Below, piece after piece: positions 45,719-62,301 of a stretch of DNA of 64,000 bases; position 1 is the first letter of the stretch; the number at the start of each line of letters is the position of its first letter. This DNA is from Lytechinus pictus (lineage: Eukaryota): positions 23,188,001-23,252,000 of the forward strand of contig NC_087261.1 of assembly GCF_037042905.1 (NCBI RefSeq), given 5' to 3'. The notes beneath the pieces are model-generated. The model searched no databases. It worked only from the letters and a program-made list of their open reading frames with translations, and had not been told where the DNA came from. The position numbers and the translations under genes were made by a program.

Positions 45719-46110
45719 ACGAACTTTGGACTATTTTGGCAAACAATGAAACTCCCTAGTACCGGCCTGGAACTCGATATAGCCGTTAACCAAACAAACC
45801 TTGCGTATCTTAAGGTCCAATATACAGTTTTAATAGATCCTAGTCTTATAATAAACACATTCTATGGTCACCTATTTTTACCGGGGATCTCCGGTATTTT
45901 AGATGAGTCATTCGAATTAACTTTTATCCATCAGAAATGGGCTTTTGCTCAGTAGAAGTTATGGTGCTTTAAAGGGGAGCGGAAATTGTGTGTTTTTATT
46001 TAGAAGGAACTGGGTCCCAGATCCGCTTTTTCCCTCATCAAGAATAGGCTTTGACCTCACAGCTTCCCGGCAAAATATGACATAATCAATGCAGCGAGGG
46101 TATATAAGAG
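45719..46110 (+). promoter_or_regulatory. Proximal promoter of IL-17 gene a: kB-like GGGGATCTCC (45883-45892), TATATAA (46101-46107)
   Basis: Block aligns in inverse to 55702-56091 upstream of paralog b; both motifs are retained in both copies. Confidence 0.7.
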
Positions 46111-46332
46111 CTTGGGATTAGGTTGACTAGTAAGAAACACCTGAGCAAATCTGAAGCATCTAGTTAAAGAAAGAGGTTCCTGTAGTTCATCTAATTCTGA
46201 TTCACTTAAAAGAAAAAAAAGAGGCTAAGTTGGTCAAAGGCACTCTTTGAACAAAAGACAAAAAAGGCTGATAGATACCAACGCGGGCGAAATCAAGAAT
46301 CTTCACACCCTAGTTGTAAATACACGTTTTTG

Positions 46333-47557
46333 ATGATGAAGGTACGTAAAAACTTCAAACTATCCTTCTACCTCTATTTGCTCACAACCGCTTATTTAAT
46401 TTCTACCCCTCCACTCTCTCACTCTCTCTCTCTCCAGCCCCCCTCCCTTCACTCCCTCTCTCTATTCCCAATTTTCTCACATCCCTTTCATTTGTTTTAT
46501 ATCCCAATATCATCATTAGATTCCTTGACATGATTCCCTAAAAAATTATTTACGTATCTTAATTAGTAGTTATTTTGTTTTCTTTAGCAAATTACGTTTT
46601 CGTGACTTCAAAAAAACAATTTATATAATACAGCATTAAGCTCTGTTTAATTAAGGTCAAGTAATTCAGGTTTGGCATCCTTTACGTAAACATGTCTACT
46701 GTAGGTAGGAACATGTGGTTGCAAACTTTAAAGAGGGGGGGGGGGTGAAATTGCCCGCAACAATACCATATGCATTTCGATCCTTCATATTAAAGCATGT
46801 GTACAAGAAAAATTACAGTTATGGTTTATGATGATACTTTCTTATATAAGTACGGGTATATTATGAATCATTGAGGGATTATGATAGAGATAGATGATTG
46901 TATTTACATGTATACTCCTAAAAAGCTGTTTATCCTGAACATACAGTTATTTTTTTTCTCTCTTTCATATTTTGTTTTCTTCCCCAGATCTGTCTTGTAA
47001 TCGTCGCTCTTATTCACACTGTCGCATCGTCACCTGTGCCAGCATCGTCATCATCAACATCGTCATCATCGCCGTATTGTCTTCCAATGAACCAAGCTGA
47101 CTACGAATCACGAGAAAGAAACGGCCATCTCTTCTATCCAAACCAAGATGCATTCGCCGTTCAGAGTTTTAATATTAGCGACGTGGACCTGGGAAGGAAA
47201 GAAGCATCAAGCTGTCCGTATGATGGCCTTTCCAGCGCGAAGAGCTGCCCGAACGGCGCCAAACCAAGTGCTTCTGAACCAACCAACGCCAACCAGGATG
47301 GACTGTGCCCGTGGACCTACGTCGAGTGCTTCGACCCCGATCGCATCCCGATGTCAATTAGCATGGCGCAGTGTCAATGTTCAGCGTGTTTAGACCCTTA
47401 CACCCATATGGCTGATCCTAACTTGCGATGCCAACCTATCTTTCATAATATGAAAGTCCTGAGAAAAACCCAGTGTGTGGATGGTCTCTTTCGATATGAG
47501 GAGGAGACTATCAATATACCGGTAGCGTGTGCATGTATGAGACAACGAGTTGCTTAA
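46333..47557 (+). CDS. IL17: Interleukin-17 family cytokine, copy a (~192 aa, secreted)
   Basis: Micro-exon ATG ATG AAG|GTACGT (46333-46341) plus exon 46988-47557 (ccccAG|ICLVIVALIHTVAS signal peptide). Cystine-knot IL-17 pattern CPWTY..DPDRIP..AQCQC..C..C.P..VL..RYE..IPVACAC. Confidence 0.93.
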
Positions 47558-48100
47558 ACTTGTCCCGTGCTGAGCAAGAAAAAACCCGCCAAAATACCAA
47601 AGATGACCATCACCTTGCCTCATTTACCATCTATAATAAATTATTTAATATCAGAGATATATTTTGTATTCATATGTAATATTTTTATTTTTGGCCTTTT
47701 AATTTATTCTTATATTTGTCAGAAATATTCATTAATTCAAACTATATTTGAAGCGATATTTGTGCAAAATATATATTTATTGTTATAATATTTCATACTT
47801 AATCACTGATATTTTTTTACCTTTGTCTTTATTTTTATATGTGTGTTTAAGCAGGTTTTGATAAACAGGTTCTGTTTTGGAAACAGCTTACTCGTAGACC
47901 ATGTCAGTTTGGCAAATGTGTGTATCCACTGTGTGGAGTGTTTGTTGCGAAGTGATGATTTCTTCAATCCCGTAGTTATAACTTATATTCTTTACATGTA
48001 TAGGATTACCAACGTGATGTATTACACATGACAAGGATTTTGTTTTCTTAATCCGAAGTCTGATGCTTATTGTATTTATTGTTTGACATTTAGACCAATA

Positions 48101-48332
48101 TGTGTATGCTATGTAACTTATTTGTATTTATCCAAATTATTGATAGTTTTCATATCACATTTGTACAATATATATATATATATATTATGTCAATATGAAA
48201 GGACTGATATTTGTTGTGTATGCTATGTAACTTATTTGTATTTATCCAAATTATTAAAAGTTTTCATATCACATTTGTACAATATATATATATATATACT
48301 ATGTCAATATAAAAGGACTGATATTTATTGTT
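48101..48332. repeat. Near-perfect tandem duplication of a ~116-bp unit
   Basis: tgtgtatgctatgtaacttatttg...aaggactgatattt occurs twice. Confidence 0.9.
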
Positions 48333-48499
48333 TGTAGAATAATGTTTCTTTTGCTGCTTTATCATTATTATAAATATTTTTGCGTTTTAGAACGTTTTGC
48401 ATAAACTGTTTCTGTGAAGCAAACAGCGTGCTCGTAGACAGTGTCAAGTTTGGCAAATGCTTGTATCCATTGTGTGGAGTGTTTGTTTACGAAGTTAGA

Positions 48500-48905
48500 A
48501 ATCGAAATGTATTTTGACAGACATGGCATCAATACTAGAAATTACAACTCCTAAAACGCAATCTTGCCAAAATCCAATAAGGAAATTTTCAAACTCTCAT
48601 CAATATATGCTGCTATAAAAGTCTGGAACTTTTCTTATTTCTACATATTTCTTAAGTGAATTCTTATACATATACTTTGTTTTTACTTTGTAATTCATTT
48701 AGATTACTATATTATTTTTGTAACTCTCTATCATCTACTCTCTAGTCATTTTGTTATATTGAATTGAATTTGTTATCTTTATATTTGGATGATTCTTTTT
48801 CATATATTCAATCTTTTAAGTTGTTGTATCAGGACCATGATGTAAAACAGCTGTGCTGATCATGTTTTAATCCTGTATAAATAAATTCAAATAAATACAT
48901 AAATT
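48500..48905 (+). mobile_element. Decayed 3' end of a CR1-group LINE
   Basis: Remnant ..AAIKVWN.. motif, 3' stem-loop caggaccatgatgtaaaacagctgtgctgatcatgttttaatcctg, and an (aaat)n-like tail. Confidence 0.55.
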
Positions 48906-49904
48906 TAATTTAAGTAAACGGTTGCCTTTTTTAATTGTTTAGCACGTCTACAGTCTTGATTTGAATACATGAACTGTCGTTATTGTTTTAAATAGTCAAA
49001 ATATATTAATCCTATATTATGTCTAAAAAATGATCTAAATTTTCAAACGATACAAACGTAATTCTTTCTTTGAAACACCAGCTTCTTTATATCATTCACT
49101 GTTAAATGTATATAGGGTACCAGTAGTATGACGCCTCTCTCATGTATCTTGTGCAAGTTGTCCAAAGGACATCGTTTATGCTATACTATTGGATTTATAC
49201 TAATTTAGGCTTCATAGCCATTATCATTATCCTATCAACTGTTTTCTTCAATATTGTTAACATGCATGTGTTAAAATTCAAATTACACAGTAAATTATTT
49301 ATGGATATTCCAAAAAAAAACATTTGTTTGTTATTTTATTATCAGGTTTTCCACTGTCATGACTATATGGTGATTATACTGCTTGTCGACCTAACGCTGG
49401 GCTTTTGCTCTAAAAAAGAATATACATATCATTTAGATTTGATGTTCTTGATGCGTTTGTTTGTAGATTTATTTGAGTAAATGGGTAACTTTGAAAAAAA
49501 AAGGCTGACCAGAACGTTTGTTTTCTCTCCCTATTATTTGTTAAATTTTACAAGAAGTGATAAAAGGAACTTTTGGCTTATTACCGCCCCCGTTAAAAAT
49601 ATAATATAACTTAAATAAAAGAGGAAAATAATGTTTTTGTGCATTTTAAAAACCTCGAAATCTAAAAGTACATTTTAAAACGAGAAAAGGAAGGGAAACA
49701 AATCGAAAATAATGTAATTTTGCAACGTGAGTGTGTGTGAAGATTAGGTATGTGTGTGCGTACGTGCGGAAGGGTATATATAATTATGTTAAATGTGTTT
49801 GGGTGTGAATGCCACGGTGTAGGTGCGTATGTGGGGTTGTCTGTGTGTCCATAAAATTCTAAGGGTTATTCAGGATGTGCTGTATGTGAACGTGTATATT
49901 AGTT

Positions 49905-50370
49905 GCGGAGGTGCGGTGGCCGAGTTGTCTACACTGTAAAAAATATTGGTTTTTTTTTTTACCACCACGAGGGTAATTATATGTCCAACCAATTTGGGGC
50001 AGTATTTTACCCAATGCGGGAAGCATGTTGTCAAGTAAGGTTCAAGATACAAGCAACAATTACTTTAGAACGGGCAAAATTTTCATCACACTTGATAAAT
50101 GAAAATGCCCCAAAGAAATGCCAGAGTTGGGTAGACACTTAATTATCATCTTGGAGCACTGTTACCCACTATTTTTTACAGTGTAAGCCGCCTGACGAGA
50201 CACAAGCAAGTCTGGGTACGATCCTCGGCCATGGCACCGATATCCGGGAGCAAGGCATATAATTAACGGTGGTATATGCAATCCCCCTTAAAATGAATGA
50301 AATTGCTCTAGGCACTACTGGAAACAAAGAGTGCAATAAATAAATAAATAAATAATGACTAAATAATAAT
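49905..50370 (+). mobile_element. tRNA-derived SINE interrupted by a CACTG MITE (49932-50183)
   Basis: ggtggccgagttgtcTA|CACTGTAAAAAATA...TATTTTTTACAGTG|TAagccg. Removing the MITE restores a tRNA-like head (GGTGGCCGAGTTGTCTAAG..GGTACGATCC); (AAT)n tail. Confidence 0.75.
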
Positions 50371-50641
50371 AATAATAAACAGTTCTTGTATAGCCGTATC
50401 ACAATTATGAATAATATATCTATGCGCTTCCAAAGGACTTGTATATTATTACCCGAGCTGTAGCTTGGCAGCCGTAATTACTAAGATTACAGCGCACACG
50501 CATTTCAAGGAATACATTCCTGCCGGGTACCCATTTATCTCACCTGCAGCACAATGTGGATAAATTTCTTGCCGAAGGAAATTACGCCATGGCTGGGATT
50601 CGAACCCACGTTCCTCTGTTTCAAAGTCCGGAGACTAATCC
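50365..50641 (-). mobile_element. tRNA-derived SINE, 5' end in the gap
   Basis: Reverse strand GGGTTCGAATCCCAGCCATGG..aaatgggtaccc; same family as 5421-5650. Confidence 0.8.
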
Positions 50642-50979
50642 NNNNNNNNNNNNNNNNNNNNNNNNNNNNNNNNNNNNNNNNNNNNNNNNNNNNNNNNNNN
50701 NNNNNNNNNNNNNNNNNNNNNNNNNNNNNNNNNNNNNNNNNNNNNNNNNNNNNNNNNNNNNNNNNNNNNNNNNNNNNNNNNNNNNNNNNNNNNNNNNNNN
50801 NNNNNNNNNNNNNNNNNNNNNNNNNNNNNNNNNNNNNNNNNNNNNNNNNNNNNNNNNNNNNNNNNNNNNNNNNNNNNNNNNNNNNNNNNNNNNNNNNNNN
50901 NNNNNNNNNNNNNNNNNNNNNNNNNNNNNNNNNNNNNNNNNNNNNNNNNNNNNNNNNNNNNNNNNNNNNNNNNNNNNNN
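50642..50979. other. Assembly gap (N run)
   Basis: Run of N. Confidence 1.
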
Positions 50980-51535
50980 CACTCTTCATCTAGCCATTGA
51001 AGTGAACCAGAGTGAAATGAAAACGAAAGAAAGGAGAGGGAAAGAAAAAGAAATATTCATAATAAAAGTCATTAGTAGCGGAAGGATTAGTAGTGGTAGA
51101 TAACTATACTGCATCATGTCAGTATACTGCGGATAGTGGATATGACACACCTGAACGTGCCGCCAGCGCATACCTAGGCACGTAGGTTTGTAAATCCGTT
51201 TGCCTTATCCAATATCTTGACATCAAAAATCGCATTTGATTAAACAACTGTAACGGTATTCTTTATATTAACAATTTTATTTGTTAATTTGATCTTGATC
51301 TCTTTGTTTAATGCCTGATATATTGTGATGCACGTTGTAAACATTCGTCCCTATCAGCAACATGTTATTCCGATTTTTTCTTTTTTTCTTCTATAATATT
51401 ATTATCCTTTTGTCTGATTGTATGACCTTAATGCAAATTTTGTCAGTAGAATTGGTTATGTCAGCACACAAATCCGGTCTGTATATCGACGTACACGCAC
51501 ACCCGACCCTTCACATTCACCCACGCACCTCAGTT

Positions 51536-52040
51536 TAAGGGGAGGCCCACCCTGACAAAAAAGTTTATTGTAAAAAATCGCAGAAAAAATCATATACATT
51601 ATTGAGGGGCTTTAAGGAGAATCCATCAGAGAATTGAAATATCATTAGAAATTCGATTATTTGATTTGTGACGTCATATGCGAGCAGCTTTCCTGCAGAT
51701 GGTATGATAACAACAAATCAATGAAATGTCATATTCTCAGAAAATTGAAAATGATCTTCATCGTACCTTTAGTATATCAATCCACAAATCTTTTTCAAAT
51801 CTTTTCCTAAAGAAGGAAAATAAAAAATAATTCATCACAAACCATAAAAAACAATCTTTATGCATTTAATATTACATAACATATGGGGCAGCTGCTCCTT
51901 AATGACATCACAAATAAATAAATTGAACTTCCAATAACTTTCTTAATCTTCAATGGATTATCGTCAAATCTTCATCGATATTTTTGATTGTTTTTTTTTT
52001 CTTCTATTTTTACAACAAAGTTTTCACAAAGTTTCACTCA
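51536..52040. mobile_element. Degenerate MITE, TTAA-flanked (Kolobok-like)
   Basis: ttaaggggaggcccaccctgacaaaaaagtttattgtaaaaa.. with inverse ..tttttacaacaaagtttt; internal inverted tgacgtcat..gagcagc / gctgctc..atgacatca. Confidence 0.55.
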
Positions 52041-53104
52041 AACTCATTATCTGTTTATACTTACAATTCCTTGCACTGTCATGACAGTTTTGTATACACA
52101 AATTCACATTTCGCACTATACCCGTATGTCCCCTCCGTTAAAATCTAATAAGGTATTCGATCCTGTTAGTTCTCAACAAGTAGTTAAGTTTTTAGAGAGA
52201 TCAACATTCAATGTGTGTGTGTGTGTGTGTGTGTGTTTTTTTCCCCCTGAAAATCTCAAATGTTCACTTCTATACCTTCCATACTTTTCTGTTTTGTTCT
52301 TACAGAGTAAACTTTAAGTTTATTTTGCGAGTCATATTTAGAGCCATGTTACATCTGCAAACGTGCATAAACATAATCATGAACGCACATATAATTATGA
52401 ATATAATCTTCAACATTTATTTATCTCAAAAGAAAAGTACATAGAAATAAAATATCAAAGCAGTATAAACAATTTGTTCTCTTCACATTAGACAGGAGGT
52501 ATTTCAATAAATCTTGCCAAAAAAAAGCCGGAAAACGTTTTAGCTGGGAACGCCCAGTTTTGTTCTTCTGGGTTACTCAAAACAGTTATTGATAGGAAGA
52601 ATGTTTGGCACCATTCAGCTATCTTCATTTTATTATGAAATTACAAAAAAAGAGAAAGAAACCCAAGTTACCTGGTGCTTGTATGTTAAGAGCGACTTAA
52701 CGAACGACTGATCTTTTCCTGGGATAAATGGTATACACTAAAATGTTCATTCGTGATGATTTAGCGCGTAAGAAAGGTTAACCAGTCGCTCTTAACTTAC
52801 GAACAACGTTATGAAACGACCCACAGGATGCGGATAGTGACATTTCATTATACCCGGTATATTGTCCGTAAAACTCATTATCCTATTTAACATCAGGCAG
52901 TCAATTTGAGCATAGAATACATCTGTACATAAGAAAGATATCCTTTATAACAATCATTTCGCCCTTAAAGTTGTTGTTAAACATATGCATATACTAATTT
53001 AATAGAAATATATTTAGAAAGTTGAACATTGTGTGTCTTTAGAGTTATACGTCTTCCTAGAAATAGCAGCATACACCTGTATGCATTTCGAGTAGTTATC
53101 ACCA

Positions 53105-53575
53105 CAAAAAAAACGGTCATTACAAAATATAATTTTAAATAATTTACACTGGCTCCCTATTAGACAACGGATTATTTTTAAGTTACTTCTCTTTGTATAC
53201 AAATCTCTCTATAACCTAGCCCCAAAATACTTGTCTGATTGTTTAGAAATTTATGTCCCAGGTAGAAAAACTAGATCCTCTGAAGACCCACTTAAATTAA
53301 CATATCCAACAAAAAGAAAACAGACCGGAGATAGAACATTCGCCGTTGCATCCTCAATGGAATGGAACAAACTCCCTCTCACAATAAGACAATCCCCAAC
53401 AATTGAGTCCTTCAAGAAGTCTCTTAAAACCCTTTTGTTCTGGGCAACTGCCTTCATTTAATATGTCATTCTGATTTTTGTTTGTATAAATAAGTTAACT
53501 GAAATTGTGAGCGCTTTGGGCCATGTGGGAAAAGCACGTTATAAATATTGAGTATTATTATTATTATTATTATTA
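53105..53575 (+). mobile_element. 3' fragment of an L2-clade LINE
   Basis: LHWLPIRQRIIFK..GDRTFAVA..EWNKLP..FKKSLKT; tail agcgctttgggcc..ttataaat(att)n. Confidence 0.85.
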
Positions 53576-54307
53576 ATGTAATATTTATATTGTTGTTTTT
53601 CTGATACAGCATTTCGGGGTTAAATTGTTCCGATGCAACGTTTCAGGTTTAGATTTCCAATGTATTTTTAAAACGCCCTCTAAGAACCCAAACGAGATTA
53701 TATCGCTTACAAAATCAGAATGGTGTTAATATTAGATTACTAATGTTTATGATTGTGTATCTAACTGTATGCAGCTCTCGGATTAATGCATGAAAACTCT
53801 TTATAACAACAATGATTCCCCTTCTTTACACAAAATAATAAACATTTACGGGCGACGAATTCTATGACCAAAACTTTTAAGAAAGGCTCACATGAGCATG
53901 TTTTCATTGAACAAACACTCCACATAGCGGATACAAAATATTTGCCAAACTTGACATGGTCTACGAGTACAATGTTCAATAAACAGAAGCAGTGTACTAG
54001 AAGGAAACGTGCTAAAACGCACAATAAGATAAACATAACAATCGATTTAAAGCGCACATCTTAAATATCAGTCATTAGATTTGCATGTAGGTTAGACAAT
54101 ATATGGATACATCATATGGCTTCAATAATAATATATTTTTTATAAACAAATAAGTTAAGCAACATATTCTTAGATAATAGATATGAATACAAATGCATAC
54201 AATTCTGATATTCAATAATTTATAATTGTAAATGTAAAATGAGGCAAGGTGATGTTAATCTTTGGTATTTTGACGGTTTTTTTCATCATTCTCAGCTTGA
54301 GACAAGT

Positions 54308-55509
54308 TTAAGCCACTCGTTGTCTCATACATGCACACGCTACCGGTATGTTCATAGTCTCCTCCTCATATCGATAGAGACCATCCACACACTGAGTTTT
54401 TCTCAAGACTTGCATGTTATGAAAGATAGGTTGGCATCGCAAGTTAGGATCAGCCATATGGGTGTAAGGGTCTAAACACGCTGAACATTGACACTGCGCC
54501 ATGCTGATGGACATCGGGATGCGATCGGGGTCGAAGCACTCGACGTAGGTCCACGGGCACAGTCCATCCTGGTTGGCGTTGGTTGGTTCAGAAGCACTTG
54601 GTTTGGCGCCGTTCGGGCAGCTCTTGGCGCTGGAAAGGCCATCGTATGGACAGCTTGATGTTTCTTTCCTTCCCATATCCACGTCGCTAATATTAAAACT
54701 CTGAACGGCGAATGCATCTTGGTTTGGATAGAACAGATGGCCGTTTCTTTCTCGTGATTCGTAGTCAGCTTGGTTCATTGGAAGACAATACGGCGATAAC
54801 GTTGATGATGAGGATGATGCTGGCACAGGTGACGATGTGACAGTGTGTACGAGCACGACGATGGCGAGATAGATCTATTGAAAGAACAATAATAAAATAA
54901 AAATAAAAACATATGACACCAATGAATCATAACTTTGATCAAAATAAACGTATAAGGGGGAGGGTTCCCCTGAATAATTGAGAATCGTTAATTTCTCACT
55001 TCGTCTTTATTGATTTCTGATTGCATTATTAGGCCTTCGTCTCGTTTGAAGATAATACATTATTATCAACCAGTATAGGCCCTATCTCTTTGATCACGAA
55101 GATTCCTTGAGGAAAAAGAACATAATGAAATTATGAATTTCTATAACTCCACTGATCATAGGTTTAGCTCATGAGCACTGTACCTAATCATTTTGTCGAG
55201 TGGATCCACAAGTCACTAATTCGGTCCTTTATAAGCTCATTTGTCTTTGTCTACAGAAGGCGAATGTATTGAAAAGATATCGCACCCATTTATAACCTGC
55301 ATTATAGAAAGCTTAATGTTGTAATTAAATAATAAAAAAATAGAAAGGAAGAAGATGTTCGTGTTATTTGGACTTTTCGATGACAATAATGATGTCTATG
55401 AAATGAAATGGAAGAAAGCGGGGGGGGGGGTCGAGAGTTTTAAAAGACGTTGAATAAGAATGGACAGAAAAATAATACAACGAGGTATGATAACTCTACG
55501 TACCTTCAT
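54308..55509 (-). CDS. IL17: Interleukin-17 family cytokine, copy b (~190 aa), inverted paralog of copy a
   Basis: Micro-exon ATG AAG|GTACGT (55509-55504) plus exon 54874-54308 (caatAG|IYLAIVVLVHTVTS). Five amino-acid differences from copy a downstream of the Ser-rich linker. Confidence 0.93.
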
Positions 55510-55701
55510 TATAAATAAGAATATATTTTCAAAGGAGCTGCAAAGGAAATTATTTTGATTCCCGTGGTTTGGTAGTAGCAAGCTTTCTTCTTCTCTGTTT
55601 TCTTCGTCCAACTTAGCCTGTTCTCACGAAGTGAATCAGAATTAAGTGAAATACATAAGACACGTTTCTTCGATGTTTCTGATTTGTTGGGATGTTTCTT
55701 T

Positions 55702-56091
55702 CTCTTATATACACCATCGTCGCCTTGATAATGTCATTATTGCCGGAAAATTATGAGCTCGGTTCTTTTTCTGGCTCAGGGAAAATAGCGGATCTGGGAC
55801 CAGGTTCCCTCTTTATAATTAAAGCAAATGATTTCCGCTCTCCTCCAATTATGCATGCCAATACGCCATAATTTCTACTGCCCGAAAACACATTTCTGAT
55901 AGTAAGCGTCCATTCGAATGACGCGTTTCATTCTTGGGGATCCCCGGTAAAACTCAATGAACACTGTATGTGTCAATTCAAAATACATGTTGATCCTAAA
56001 GATACGATGTGTTTATTTGGCTAACGGCTATTTAGAGGTCCAGGCCGGTACTACACAGTTTCATTGTTTGCTAGAGTAGTCCAAAGTTCGT
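55702..56091 (-). promoter_or_regulatory. Proximal promoter of IL-17 copy b: palindromic kB-like GGGGATCCCC (55936-55945), TATATAA (55711-55705)
   Basis: Homologous to 45719-46110. Confidence 0.7.
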
Positions 56092-59619: not shown

Positions 59620-61234
59620 ACAGTAGATACATGAAAGAAGGGTAGTTTTGATGCTCTAAGAAATGAATTTTTACGATTTGGGATAATTGAGACTGACACC
59701 CACTCCACACGAACACATTCTTACACACCCGCACACACGCACCGTTACACACACCATCACATGAACCTTAAAACAAGCAGGATATGGGACGAGGATGTAT
59801 GTTCACTTGATATGAGAAACTTAAAACATGTGAAAATTGATTAATGGTGACAATTCAAGTCAGAAAACAATAAATTCGCAATCGATCGCCTGCACACAAA
59901 GTGCGCAAAAGAATGAGACATGTCACAACGATAGATAAGTAATCATACCCATTTATTTCATAATTGTTAGACAGTAATGTTAAATGAATTTGTAATTGAA
60001 ATTTAAAAAGAGAAGGTAGAATGAAAGCAGCTTTGATAGGGTAGATCATGAATGTTTTATTAAAATGAATCCATCAAAATCAACGGCTTTACGATTTTTT
60101 CCCTGTTTTGTTAAATAGATAAAAACCCGGATTTTTTATTAATCAGTTAAAACTCAATTCTCCCTCAACGAAGCATCCAATACGACAAAGCCTTTCAATT
60201 CAGATTTTACAATTTAGAGCATTTATTCTAATTTTGATCGAAACGAGGACACCGTCCGACCCATCTGCCCACAATATACCTTTTGAGAAACAAATTGAAT
60301 TAACACTGTTCCCATTTTTATTGTTATACCCTTCAAAATGTATGTGATCATTTAAATATTGATTATCATTAGCAATATCCCCACATAGTGGGTACGTTAT
60401 ATTTTCAATCGTCATTACTTGACATATTTTGTTTAAACATGACCTTATGAAGGCTACATACAATAAGATTTTCCCATTAAACATCGCATTATGATATTGA
60501 ATACGCATGATGATATTATACAGAATACATAAAATGGTACGTCATTTATATTATGATAATGAATACTAAGGATAAACATAATGGCTACAAACTTGTACCA
60601 TTCTAGCACAAAACTATCAGATTTTGATATTTTCAAAGAGTTCAAAAGGCATATCATGCGAAAGTAAAACTAGGTTTGCCTCAAATCAATAATATGAGTT
60701 TTGATTTACAAGTCCATTAGAGGGCTGCTTCGTAAGTTCGTCATATAATCGTGGACTGGAGCCCAAGTACCATAGGCGAAAGGTGATATTTTGGGAAATC
60801 CATTTTGTCGTCATGAGCAAATTGATATGCCAGAGGACGTCAAGGGAGCTTAGGCCACCACATTGTTTCGTGTTGTATCACTCCTCCGAGTTTGTATGTC
60901 GTGCACATAAAACATAAAATTATGGTGCTATACGTAGCAGTCCTCTAGTGAACCACGAAATCGAAAATGGTACAATGATAACAATAACAACACAAGTCCG
61001 ATAGGGTACCATTATCAAATTTGATTTTCAAATTTTAGATCTCGTATTATAAAACAGGTACTAATATGCCGTGCGCCTCATAGCATAAAACCTTACCCTT
61101 GATGCTCATGAGTATAGGACTTTATTATTCTTAAAACTAGATAACATTGAATATGATTATGGGTTTTCTATAGATGAATCAAAATTTACTCGCTGATTAA
61201 AAATCATCTACAGGGGGCCTGGAGGGTGGTTTAA

Positions 61235-62301
61235 TTAGGCTATCCTCTGGCGCATGCAAGTGCAAGCCACCGGAACGGCCAGGTTCTGTTCCTCGTACCT
61301 GAACATCCCGCGGGCGCACTCGGTTTTCTTCAGCACCCTGATGTTCCTCATGACTGGGGTGCACTTGAGGGCGGGGTTTGGAAGATGGGTGTAAGGGTCG
61401 AGGCATCCCCTGCACTGGCACTGGGCCACCTGCAACGCCATCGGGATGCGATCCGAGTCGAAGCACTCCACATATGTCCATGGACACTGGACGTCCTCGT
61501 TGACTACCGCAGTGCTGCCAGGGGCTGAACCTGATGGGCAAGATGAGTTGCTCGGGAACCCGGCGTAGGTAGTGTTGGAGCAGGTATCCGACTGGCTCCG
61601 TCCAATGTCTTCCGGTGAAAGAGAGAAGGACCTGACGGCGAATGCAGCTTTGTTGGGGTACAGGTCCGCCCGAGGAAGAGAATGGTTGGAGACACAGGTC
61701 GAAGGCACTGGGTTGCAGTAGCTGCCAGCGATAAGAGCAAAGAGAAAGATTGCAGTCACGGCGTTCTGTAGTGTAAATAAAAAAAATAGGACAATATAAT
61801 TAAGGTAATGAAAACTTTGTGATTATCGCTCAGAACCAACTTCATGAACTTGAAATCTGGTAAGCAAAAAGCAGAAGCGGTCATAACATCTGCATGAACA
61901 AGGCGATAATTAATCAATATAATTAACATAACATAATTATACCCAATGAATACACAAATTATTACAACAAAGTTCCATTTGTCAATACTGATTTAGAATG
62001 GATACGATATTTAAAACGCATCTTTCCATAACAGTTGTAGATTCATTTTTGGGCAGTATTACTAAAGCACCAGAGTGCTTCTAAATTCATTTTTTAATGT
62101 GAAATGAGGCAAGTGTAATAAAACCATCAAAATTAAGAATGTTGTGTACACACATAATGGAAGTATTCTTCTTTTTTTCAGGCTCTCAGTTAATGATTTG
62201 TGTGGAAAATGAAAGCCACATGGTCTCGATCCGAATGGCAACCGTACTGAAAGAGAAATAGACAAACAGTGTAGGCTGGATATCATATTTACCTGGAACA
62301 T
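61235..62301 (-). CDS. IL17: Interleukin-17 family cytokine, copy c (~179 aa), more divergent paralog
   Basis: Micro-exon ATG TTC CAG|GTAAAT (62301-62293) plus exon 61765-61235 (tacAG|NAVTAIFLFALIAGSYC signal peptide). CPWTYVECFDSDRIP..AQCQC..C..C.P..VL..RYE..VPVACTC. TATAAAG at ~62481-62475. Confidence 0.93.

Follow-up and report, generated by a model that had tools for sequence, protein, structure and literature searches.

The window analysed here, a stretch of 64,000 nucleotides (nt) of the Lytechinus pictus genome (contig NC_087261.1, positions 23,188,001 to 23,252,000), contains the interleukin-17 (IL-17) genes IL-17a, IL-17b and IL-17c, and downstream of each of them we found a hairpin, HP3, that recurs after IL-17 genes of other sea urchins and is very probably part of a conserved and selected RNA structure of the 3' untranslated region (3'UTR). 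HP3 has a stem of 5 base pairs (bp), NCCAC/GUGGN', and a triloop of the pyrimidine-purine-pyrimidine (YRY) type, which is UAU, UGU or CAU. Judged from the aligned copies, it is under selection that preserves its pairing. It is accompanied by a second hairpin, SL2, and in some lineages by an upstream triloop hairpin, SL1. Our best explanation is that the sequence block holding HP3 after IL-17a and IL-17b represents an old structural RNA module of echinoid IL-17 3'UTRs in its IL-17-1-like version, and the best single reading of its role, as far as sequence can suggest one, is that it would act as Roquin/Regnase stem-loop elements do, in a variant form.

Hairpins downstream of echinoid IL-17 genes

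The original prediction, made from the window alone, described a block occurring twice after IL-17a and once after IL-17b, and this was confirmed, with 367 nt (a1), 908 nt (a2) and 376 nt (b) between the stop codon and the hairpin. The three hairpins lie where they had been placed, at 47925-47937, 48466-48478 and 53931-53919 (minus strand), and so does TTCTGTGAA at 48410-48418. The blocks align over about 110 nt with 76% mean column identity and long invariant runs; outside them, the 3' flanks of IL-17a and IL-17b are unalignable past about 80 nt from the stop. A fourth copy in the window, HP3 of IL-17c at 60380-60392 (minus strand), had not been part of that prediction. The features of the copies are as follows.

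47840..47955, plus strand: block copy a1 (alignment; L. variegatus orthologue L004:16024-15904, 94% identity)
47872..47886, plus strand: upstream hairpin of a1, CUGUUU-UGG-AAACAG, 6 bp, loop YRR (hairpin scan; RNAfold minimum-energy structure)
47902..47914, plus strand: SL2 of a1, UGUCA-GUU-UGGCA (SL2 alignment)
47925..47937, plus strand: HP3 of a1, UCCAC-UGU-GUGGA after GUA (pair probability 0.77-0.82; within a spliced RNA contig)
48407..48421, plus strand: SL1 of a2, triloop hairpin UGUUUC-UGU-GAAGCA, holding UUCUGUGAA (hairpin scan; identical in L. variegatus)
48442..48455, plus strand: SL2 of a2, UGUCA-AGUU-UGGCA (SL2 alignment)
48466..48478, plus strand: HP3 of a2, UCCAU-UGU-GUGGA, with a U.G closing pair (HP3 alignment; RNA contigs)
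53905..54015, minus strand: block copy b (alignment; L. variegatus orthologue L004:11456-11573, 94% identity)
53943..53956, minus strand: SL2 of b, UGUCA-AGUU-UGGCA (SL2 alignment)
53919..53931, minus strand: HP3 of b, UCCGC-UAU-GUGGA, with G.U at pair 4 as in L. variegatus (HP3 alignment)
60442..60454, minus strand: SL1 of c, GCCUU-CAU-AAGGU, 7 bp in Strongylocentrotus purpuratus (hairpin scan)
60410..60424, minus strand: SL2 of c, UGUCA-AGUAA-UGACG (S. purpuratus copy UAUCA..UGAUA, a compensatory change from G-C to A-U)
60380..60392, minus strand: HP3 of c, CCCAC-UAU-GUGGG after GUA (842 nt past the stop, 58 nt before AATAAA)

Taken alone, the number of 13-mer hairpin patterns in the window is weak evidence (3 with one mismatch allowed, against 0.63 expected), and what decides against chance is that HP3 recurs in further species and after further IL-17 genes. 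Loci from other echinoderms were reached through their IL-17 proteins, the other L. pictus IL-17 loci were added, and all were scanned. Five echinoid species (two Lytechinus, S. purpuratus and two Diadema) have an HP3-type hairpin, and the genes that it follows belong to at least four IL-17 paralogue groups; in all loci where it was found it lies on the sense strand, past the stop. In L. pictus it follows genes a (twice), b, c and d, the last a three-exon paralogue 20 Mb distant with HP3 about 534 nt past the stop; it also follows four L. variegatus orthologues, the S. purpuratus orthologue of c, four D. antillarum genes and one D. setosum gene. Measured in 14 copies, the distance from the stop ranges from 367 to 1468 nt. 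The fourth D. antillarum copy (L056), 2089 nt past the stop, was left out of the alignments, which therefore hold 15 HP3 copies. GTA stands immediately 5' of the stem in every one of these 15. A BLAST search with the block sequence gave no match at the S. purpuratus locus, where a structure-based scan recovered a copy with compensated stem changes; the IL-17 flank of the sea cucumber Holothuria had no recognisable copy.

Some further hairpins were seen during these scans. In the sea star Patiria miniata, three YRY triloop hairpins lie within about 110 nt (L055:6225-6330, 615-720 nt past an IL-17 stop), with stems of 8, 5 and 6 bp, loops UGC, UAC and UAC, and GTA before the middle one. This trio may be a sea star counterpart, but its loops end in C and its sequence is dissimilar. 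Three tandem L. pictus IL-17 genes (L030:731, L031:738, L032:779) have GTA followed by UUUCA-UAU-UGAAA about 135 nt past the IL-17 domain, and another one (L026:2672) has the GTA-type hairpin CUCAC-CAU-GUGAG. These hairpins with other stems may be diverged copies or chance, about 0.7-1.5 of the kind (GTA plus a 5-bp YRY hairpin) being expected in the 50 kb scanned.

That the block might be a dispersed repeat had been named as a possible refutation, and the genome search ruled it out: a 101-nt block sequence has 3 copies in 811 Mb, all of them in the window. The HP3 pattern GTANCCACYRYGTGG is not generally enriched in the genome (11 matches against 9 in the reversed control); 3 of the 11 are in sense orientation just downstream of IL-17 genes, for which we estimate an expectation of about 3e-4 (about 39 kb, 1.6 Gb of strand positions). 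A composite SL2-HP3 pattern had 2 exact matches and none in the control. The remaining places in the genome that fit the HP3 pattern (L044-L054) all lack an SL2-like partner, and two pairs of them are repeats in their own right. A repeat or transposon fragment would find support in the internal duplication within IL-17a and in nothing more, the block is not flanked by terminal repeats or target-site duplications, and we give this origin a negligible probability.

The hairpin could also be without function, a leftover of duplication or gene conversion that folds by chance. The coding parts of IL-17a and IL-17b are 94% identical, which suggests conversion; 5-bp YRY hairpins arise by chance about once per 930 nt; and when L. 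pictus is compared with L. variegatus, the identity of the blocks (88-96%) barely exceeds that of the surrounding UTR (82-92%). Since the background UTR is already so similar, we rejected the identity profile of these two species as a test of constraint. Against an absence of function, a 16-nt core persists after IL-17 paralogues whose proteins are only about 40-65% identical, it persists in Diadema and Strongylocentrotus with unalignable flanks, a share of the few genome-wide matches follows IL-17 genes as described above, and the stem substitutions are almost all pairing-preserving. The retention of HP3 between such distant proteins, with the rest of the UTR unalignable, points to selection despite the shared ancestry, and a functionless leftover is very improbable. 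For the time scale, Buckley et al. give 268 million years for the deeper cidaroid split and 50 million years for Lytechinus versus Strongylocentrotus.

The pairing in the 15-copy alignment supports an RNA helix. Altogether, 97.3% of the 75 stem cells pair, distributed as follows.

Pair 1 (outermost): U-A 8, C-G 4, A-U 1, mismatch 2
Pair 2: C-G 15 of 15
Pair 3: C-G 14, U-A 1 (S. purpuratus CCUAC..GUAGG)
Pair 4: A-U 13, G.U 2
Pair 5 (loop-closing): C-G 14, U.G 1

Two stem positions thus show compensatory double changes and two show wobble changes. None of 500 shuffles matched the HP3 covariation score, and registers slid by 1-3 columns pair in 21-63% of cells. RNAalifold, which had been proposed as a check on orthologs, was run independently and predicts exactly the HP3 helix and nothing else, and in single-sequence folding the pair probability is 0.36-0.99 in 13 copies. 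The loop keeps the YRY form in all 15 copies (UAU 10, UGU 4, CAU 1), in agreement with the original prediction, and the wobble pairs, which it had noted on the sense strand, exist on that strand only.

SL2 (UGUCA-AGUU-UGRCA) lies 10-17 nt upstream of HP3, and 96.3% of its stem cells pair in 14 copies. It has compensatory changes from G-C to A-U in S. purpuratus and from U-A to A-U in gene d, and its covariation score was matched by 13 of 500 shuffles. A lower stem had been thought possible beneath HP3, and it holds in the a/b family: a helix reaching 9 bp in length lies directly against HP3 on the 3' side, with pairing in all 84 cells. Its six variable pairs are each changed on one side, between Watson-Crick and wobble, and it leaves a 5-nt bulge ending in GUA. 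The lower helix and SL2 are alternative folds, since the 5' arm of the former shares sequence with the 3' arm of the latter; across gene families support exists for SL2 only, not for the lower helix. A microRNA precursor was considered and rejected, the longest helix being 14 bp with a bulge.

These substitutions also bear on the possibility that the element works as DNA, as a downstream enhancer, a silencer or a palindromic transcription-factor site shared by the IL-17 genes. HP3 and SL2 are both DNA palindromes, TGTGG presumably resembles the Runx core, and in Diadema the 3' arm of SL2 overlaps a perfect TGACGTCA cyclic AMP response element (CRE; L007:11990-11997 and L009 in D. antillarum). 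Moreover, orientation is inherited with gene duplication, so the constant sense orientation proves little. However, the compensatory double changes keep pairing and not half-sites, the CRE was not seen outside Diadema, and the element lies within mature mRNA. We favour sense-strand RNA over a DNA palindrome because the element is transcribed and because its many G.U pairs, read from the opposite strand or as DNA, would turn into A-C mismatches, and also because the S. purpuratus double change (CCTAC..GTAGG) destroys the TGTGG-type site and keeps the pair. A DNA-level element is accordingly improbable.

Transcripts of IL-17a

The position of the hairpins in mature mRNA was examined with assembled RNA contigs. 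The genes and transcript features concerned are listed here.

46132..46339, plus strand: IL-17a exon 1, 5'UTR and first approximately 2 codons (RNA contigs of X1, X2 and X6)
46986..47557, plus strand: IL-17a exon 2, coding part, with the stop at 47555-47557 (open reading frame, PF06083, splice joint)
47558..49275, plus strand: IL-17a long 3'UTR, extent by RNA contigs, end approximate
47635..47640, plus strand: proximal AATAAA, probable alternative poly(A) site (contig end, depth fall)
48880..48895, plus strand: two distal AATAAA hexamers, about 400 nt past a2 (RNA contigs run on to about 49275)
54308..54856, minus strand: IL-17b coding exon 2, convergent paralogue of IL-17a (open reading frame, inverted repeat with IL-17a, PF06083)
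61235..61486, minus strand: IL-17c, the third IL-17 gene, coding end (PF06083 at 61250-61486; last stop base 61235)

In runs X1, X2 and X6, a GT..AG intron is spliced out of the RNA contigs, which connect 46339 directly with 46986. A contig of 1354 nt from X6 begins in exon 1, is spliced and continues unbroken to 48130, through copy a1, which is also covered by separate contigs in X1 and X2. Further contigs cover 48307-48869 and 48840-49275, and copy a2 lies within the X1 contig 48344-48525 and the X6 contig 48307-48869. No contig coverage was found in the IL-17a intron or at 49288-49900. The RNA status of the runs had initially been guessed, and the splice joint together with the exon-shaped coverage settles their RNA origin. 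A 3'UTR location in mature mRNA is thus observed for both a1, on a spliced contig, and a2, on the further contigs.

Transcripts ending upstream of the hairpins had been set as a refutation of the whole idea, with the AATAAA at 47635 as a possible cause. The hexamer is present (47635-47640) and probably does end many IL-17a transcripts early, but the contigs that reach a1 and a2 belong to transcripts that pass it. One X2 contig stops at 47655, 15 nt past this hexamer, and contig depth, itself a poor measure of expression level, is 11-35 in the coding part and several-fold lower (1-5) after about 47600. Judging from this contig end and the drop in depth, the long isoform is probably accompanied by a short one that lacks the hairpins.

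Other observations concern the same region. Between a1 and a2, at 48101-48328, a unit of 114 nt is present in tandem duplicate (96% identity); it is single copy in L. variegatus, and it interrupts the RNA contigs. At 48869 the contigs of three runs depart from the reference into related but different sequence, which probably represents a divergent allele of the distal poly(A) region. Further on, 49904-50211 and 50366-50500 have a depth of hundreds to thousands in the RNA runs, with strongly one-stranded reads in X8. This sequence looks like a dispersed repeat derived from tRNA and similar to a short interspersed nuclear element, beside a masked N stretch at about 50640-50980, and searches of it gave no tRNA and no Rfam match.

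The open reading frame at 47036-47557 is 99% identical to L. pictus interleukin-17D-like and 96% to its L. variegatus counterpart. IL-17a (plus strand) and IL-17b (minus strand) are arranged tail to tail, their coding parts forming an inverted repeat of 542 nt with 94% identity. Exon 2 of IL-17a has about 190 codons and the annotated protein (P0001) has 192 residues; given the splice joint, the first coding exon must be tiny. S. purpuratus IL17-1 genes likewise have a tiny first coding exon (PMC5457136). Membership of IL-17a and IL-17b in the IL17-1 subfamily, proposed from the two-exon structure and gene counts alone, is uncertain. Orthologues of IL-17c are P0009 in L. variegatus and P0008 in S. 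purpuratus, and the L. pictus genome has 13 PF06083 matches in total. Two public IL-17 gene models in S. purpuratus and L. variegatus (L005, L042) extend over 19-23 kb and encode proteins with fewer than 200 residues; one of them encloses another gene, and their first exons are probably wrongly joined.

Candidate readers and a possible role in mRNA decay

In mammals, stem-loop decay by Roquin and Regnase limits inflammation, and IL-17 signalling feeds back on Regnase-1. We found one Roquin in the L. pictus genome, with a ROQ domain of 108.7 bits whose 71-residue core is about 85% identical to that of human Roquin-1/2. The core keeps Y250, K259 and R260, and these and the neighbouring residues are identical to human. 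Mutation of Y250, K259 and R260 abolishes RNA binding, and the nematode equivalents are needed for binding of the ets-4 stem-loop by RLE-1 (PMC9371910). There are also two PF11977 loci for Regnase-type (Zc3h12a-type) RNases, so that what a Regnase-1 target calls for, a YRY-loop stem-loop in the 3'UTR and a Zc3h12a-type RNase in the same organism, is found here; cleavage is only putative.

SL1 is the part of the module where a likeness to known ligands is closest. Four of 8 independent lineages have an SL1 with a YRY triloop and 6-7 bp, at a distance of 25-95 nt on the upstream side of HP3, with the following stems.

Copy a2: UGUUUC-UGU-GAAGCA
S. purpuratus c: UAGCCUU-CAU-AAGGUUA (5 bp in Lytechinus)
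D. antillarum: UACUCAA-UGU-UUGAGUA
D. setosum: UUGCAUC-UGU-GAUGCAG

The stem sequences are mutually unrelated and the loops are UGU or CAU. The flanks have a background of one YRY hairpin of at least 6 bp per 2077 nt, giving a binomial P of about 3e-5 for an interval that was picked after the data had been seen, and we therefore call the enrichment upstream of HP3 suggestive. By their sequences, the SL1 hairpins look like the parts most similar to canonical decay elements. In the fourth D. antillarum copy (L056:8205-8270), a U-rich hexaloop hairpin, CACUC-GUUGUU-GAGUG, stands in place of the upstream triloop hairpin.

We propose that HP3, SL2 and SL1, two or three stem-loops per long isoform, would recruit stem-loop-specific decay factors, docking through the ROQ domain of the single urchin Roquin, a Zc3h12a/Regnase-type RNase, or both. 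We infer that the element destabilises the mRNA; decay of this kind would keep IL-17 mRNA short-lived and give a brief pulse of expression after bacterial exposure, and the proximal poly(A) site of IL-17a would drop the element and let some transcripts escape control. A short-lived mRNA fits the pulse seen in L. pictus larvae exposed to Vibrio, in which IL17 transcripts, absent beforehand, have appeared by 6 h and become attenuated by 24 h (PMC11688612). As the reader, Roquin, Regnase or both are plausible candidates, with a chance near even to judge from the hairpin and the protein sequences. The full statement, that an old IL-17 3'UTR stem-loop module is destabilising and is read by Roquin/Regnase, we place just short of an even chance. 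More doubtful, though possible, is a wider reading in which Roquin/Regnase decay of cytokine mRNA predates vertebrates and echinoid IL-17 has been under ROQ control for more than 200-250 million years. It would include an undescribed composite ligand (a short YRY triloop stem whose invariant GUA lies in a bulge on its 5' side, together with a tetraloop hairpin that covaries and a hairpin of free sequence resembling a constitutive decay element) and alternative polyadenylation as an escape route.

Beside the retrospective choice of the SL1 interval, several observations weigh against a Roquin/Regnase-type decay element. The exact UUCUGUGAA occurs in copy a2 alone, in both Lytechinus species, and the SL1 of a2 competes with the CUGUUU/AAACAG fold that is also present in a1. 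HP3 has a pair probability below 0.25 in two Diadema copies, and its loops show only two changes, both transitions that keep YRY automatically. The transcript check covers IL-17a, from assembled contigs of runs taken as RNA on the strength of the splice joint, the 3'UTR placement in IL-17b, c and d being by position, and the raw-read RNA run X8 had zero IL-17 reads. ATTTA motifs do occur near the hairpins, as had been pointed out, yet at the level expected from 66-72% A+T (14 versus 11.5, 5 versus 4.5 and 1 versus 4.4 expected), and our test for AU-rich elements found neither enrichment of ATTTA nor any UUAUUUAUU nonamer. In addition, the HP3 stem and the 5' GUA are near-invariant over more than 200 million years, across the Diadema-Lytechinus split. 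A fixed CCAC/GUGG stem with an invariant GUA suggests sequence-specific reading, and Roquin reads mainly shape. Finally, SL2, a tetraloop hairpin, is no known Roquin ligand, GUA is no known feature of the constitutive decay element, and HP3 departs from both published definitions of that element in the ways given below.

The same observations feed the most serious alternative, a conserved RNA module read through GUA, the CCAC/GUGG stem and SL2 by another, sequence-specific RNA-binding protein, with a role in translation, localisation, stabilisation or 3'-end choice. The GUA in all aligned copies, the near-invariant stem core across paralogues with unalignable UTRs, and SL2 with its fixed spacing of 10-17 nt, a pair of traits that is no known feature of constitutive decay elements, all speak for such a protein, as do the departures of HP3 from both definitions and the lack of a matching Rfam family (a scan of 46000-56000 with E up to 10 gave two chance-level matches, both elsewhere). 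On the other hand, no candidate protein is known; the YRY loop, U at loop position 3 and C-G closing pair make up the loop geometry of solved ROQ complexes; and the sequence-variable YRY hairpins of 6-7 bp nearby fit recognition by shape. We consider a sequence-specific reader the less likely of the two, and keep the variant Roquin/Regnase stem-loop element as the best reading.

When urchin larvae are exposed to bacteria, IL-17 is the first cytokine to be induced in the gut, in a sharp pulse of expression. In the urchin IL-17 literature that we examined, UTR or mRNA-stability control goes unmentioned, and full-text searches turned up no Roquin/Regnase-type element reported for a cytokine mRNA of an invertebrate. 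As an invertebrate target of Roquin, the literature searches gave a nematode transcription factor and no other (PMC9371910). The urchin element may make stem-loop control of cytokine mRNAs before vertebrates testable, and it offers a handle for mutation in an organism where CRISPR, morpholinos and the injection of mRNA are everyday tools. A new mode of recognition may be defined by the fixed GUA together with the companion hairpin. Being directly testable in urchin larvae, the element should be of interest to comparative immunologists and RNA biologists.

Comparison with known stem-loop elements

As stated by Braun et al., the strict constitutive decay element (CDE), derived from TNF, has a YRY triloop and three Y-R pairs in the upper stem; in their relaxed definition, which rests on experiments, the stem measures 6-8 bp, contains no G.U and carries a YRN loop (PMC6294493). 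Conserved CDEs strongly favour U at loop position 3, and in reporter assays 5-bp stems were clearly weaker, 9-bp stems were inactive and tandem elements cooperated (PMC6294493). No IL17 gene appears in the human CDE target lists of that work (six supplement files, PMC6294493).

The hairpins had been described as CDE-like, which stands for the YRY loop, for the U at loop position 3 (both in 15 of 15 HP3 copies) and for conservation, the hairpin being kept in five echinoids with compensatory changes. It does not stand for the stem. The upper stem of HP3 is CAC/GUG, with R-Y as the second pair, which is outside the strict definition; its length of 5 bp (6 in gene d) is outside the relaxed one, which also bars the G.U pairs in the b and a2 copies. 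HP3 is not filed as a CDE. The strict upper-stem rule is followed by the a2-specific SL1 alone (UUC-UGU-GAA, 48407-48421), and the SL1 hairpins in general follow the relaxed rule apart from occasional wobble pairs.

Compared with the TNF CDE, the urchin element is likewise found in the 3'UTR of a cytokine, as a hairpin whose YRY triloop is closed by C-G and has U at position 3; a2 adds the exact UUC-UGU-GAA hairpin. It differs in the R-Y second pair of HP3, hence in having no 3' purine stack, in its 5 continuous bp, and in the invariant 5' GUA and the fixed companion hairpin. With the tandem CDEs of UCP3, for which cooperation of adjacent stem-loops is known, it shares at least two triloop hairpins close by and, in SL1, a free stem sequence (PMC6294493). 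Measured against that relaxed consensus, HP3 is too short and fixed in its stem sequence, and several SL1 stems have a wobble pair.

The system closest in being invertebrate is that of C. elegans ets-4, where the elements ADE and RCE are read by RLE-1/Roquin and REGE-1/Regnase (PMC9371910). Both are 3'UTR arrangements of adjacent stem-loops, all of which are needed in ets-4, and the ROQ domain is conserved with the same RNA-binding residues (PMC9371910). The nematode Roquin site is, in contrast, the hexaloop ADE and not a triloop, and the target is a transcription factor and not a cytokine (PMC9371910). CSF3 (G-CSF) differs from the urchin element in its closing pair, A-U there and C-G in the urchin, and in being without a conserved GUA or SL2. 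What it shares with the urchin element is a hairpin with a YAU triloop in the 3'UTR of a cytokine, which came to be recognised as a Roquin CDE in CSF3 (PMC6294493); UAU is the commonest loop in the urchin copies.

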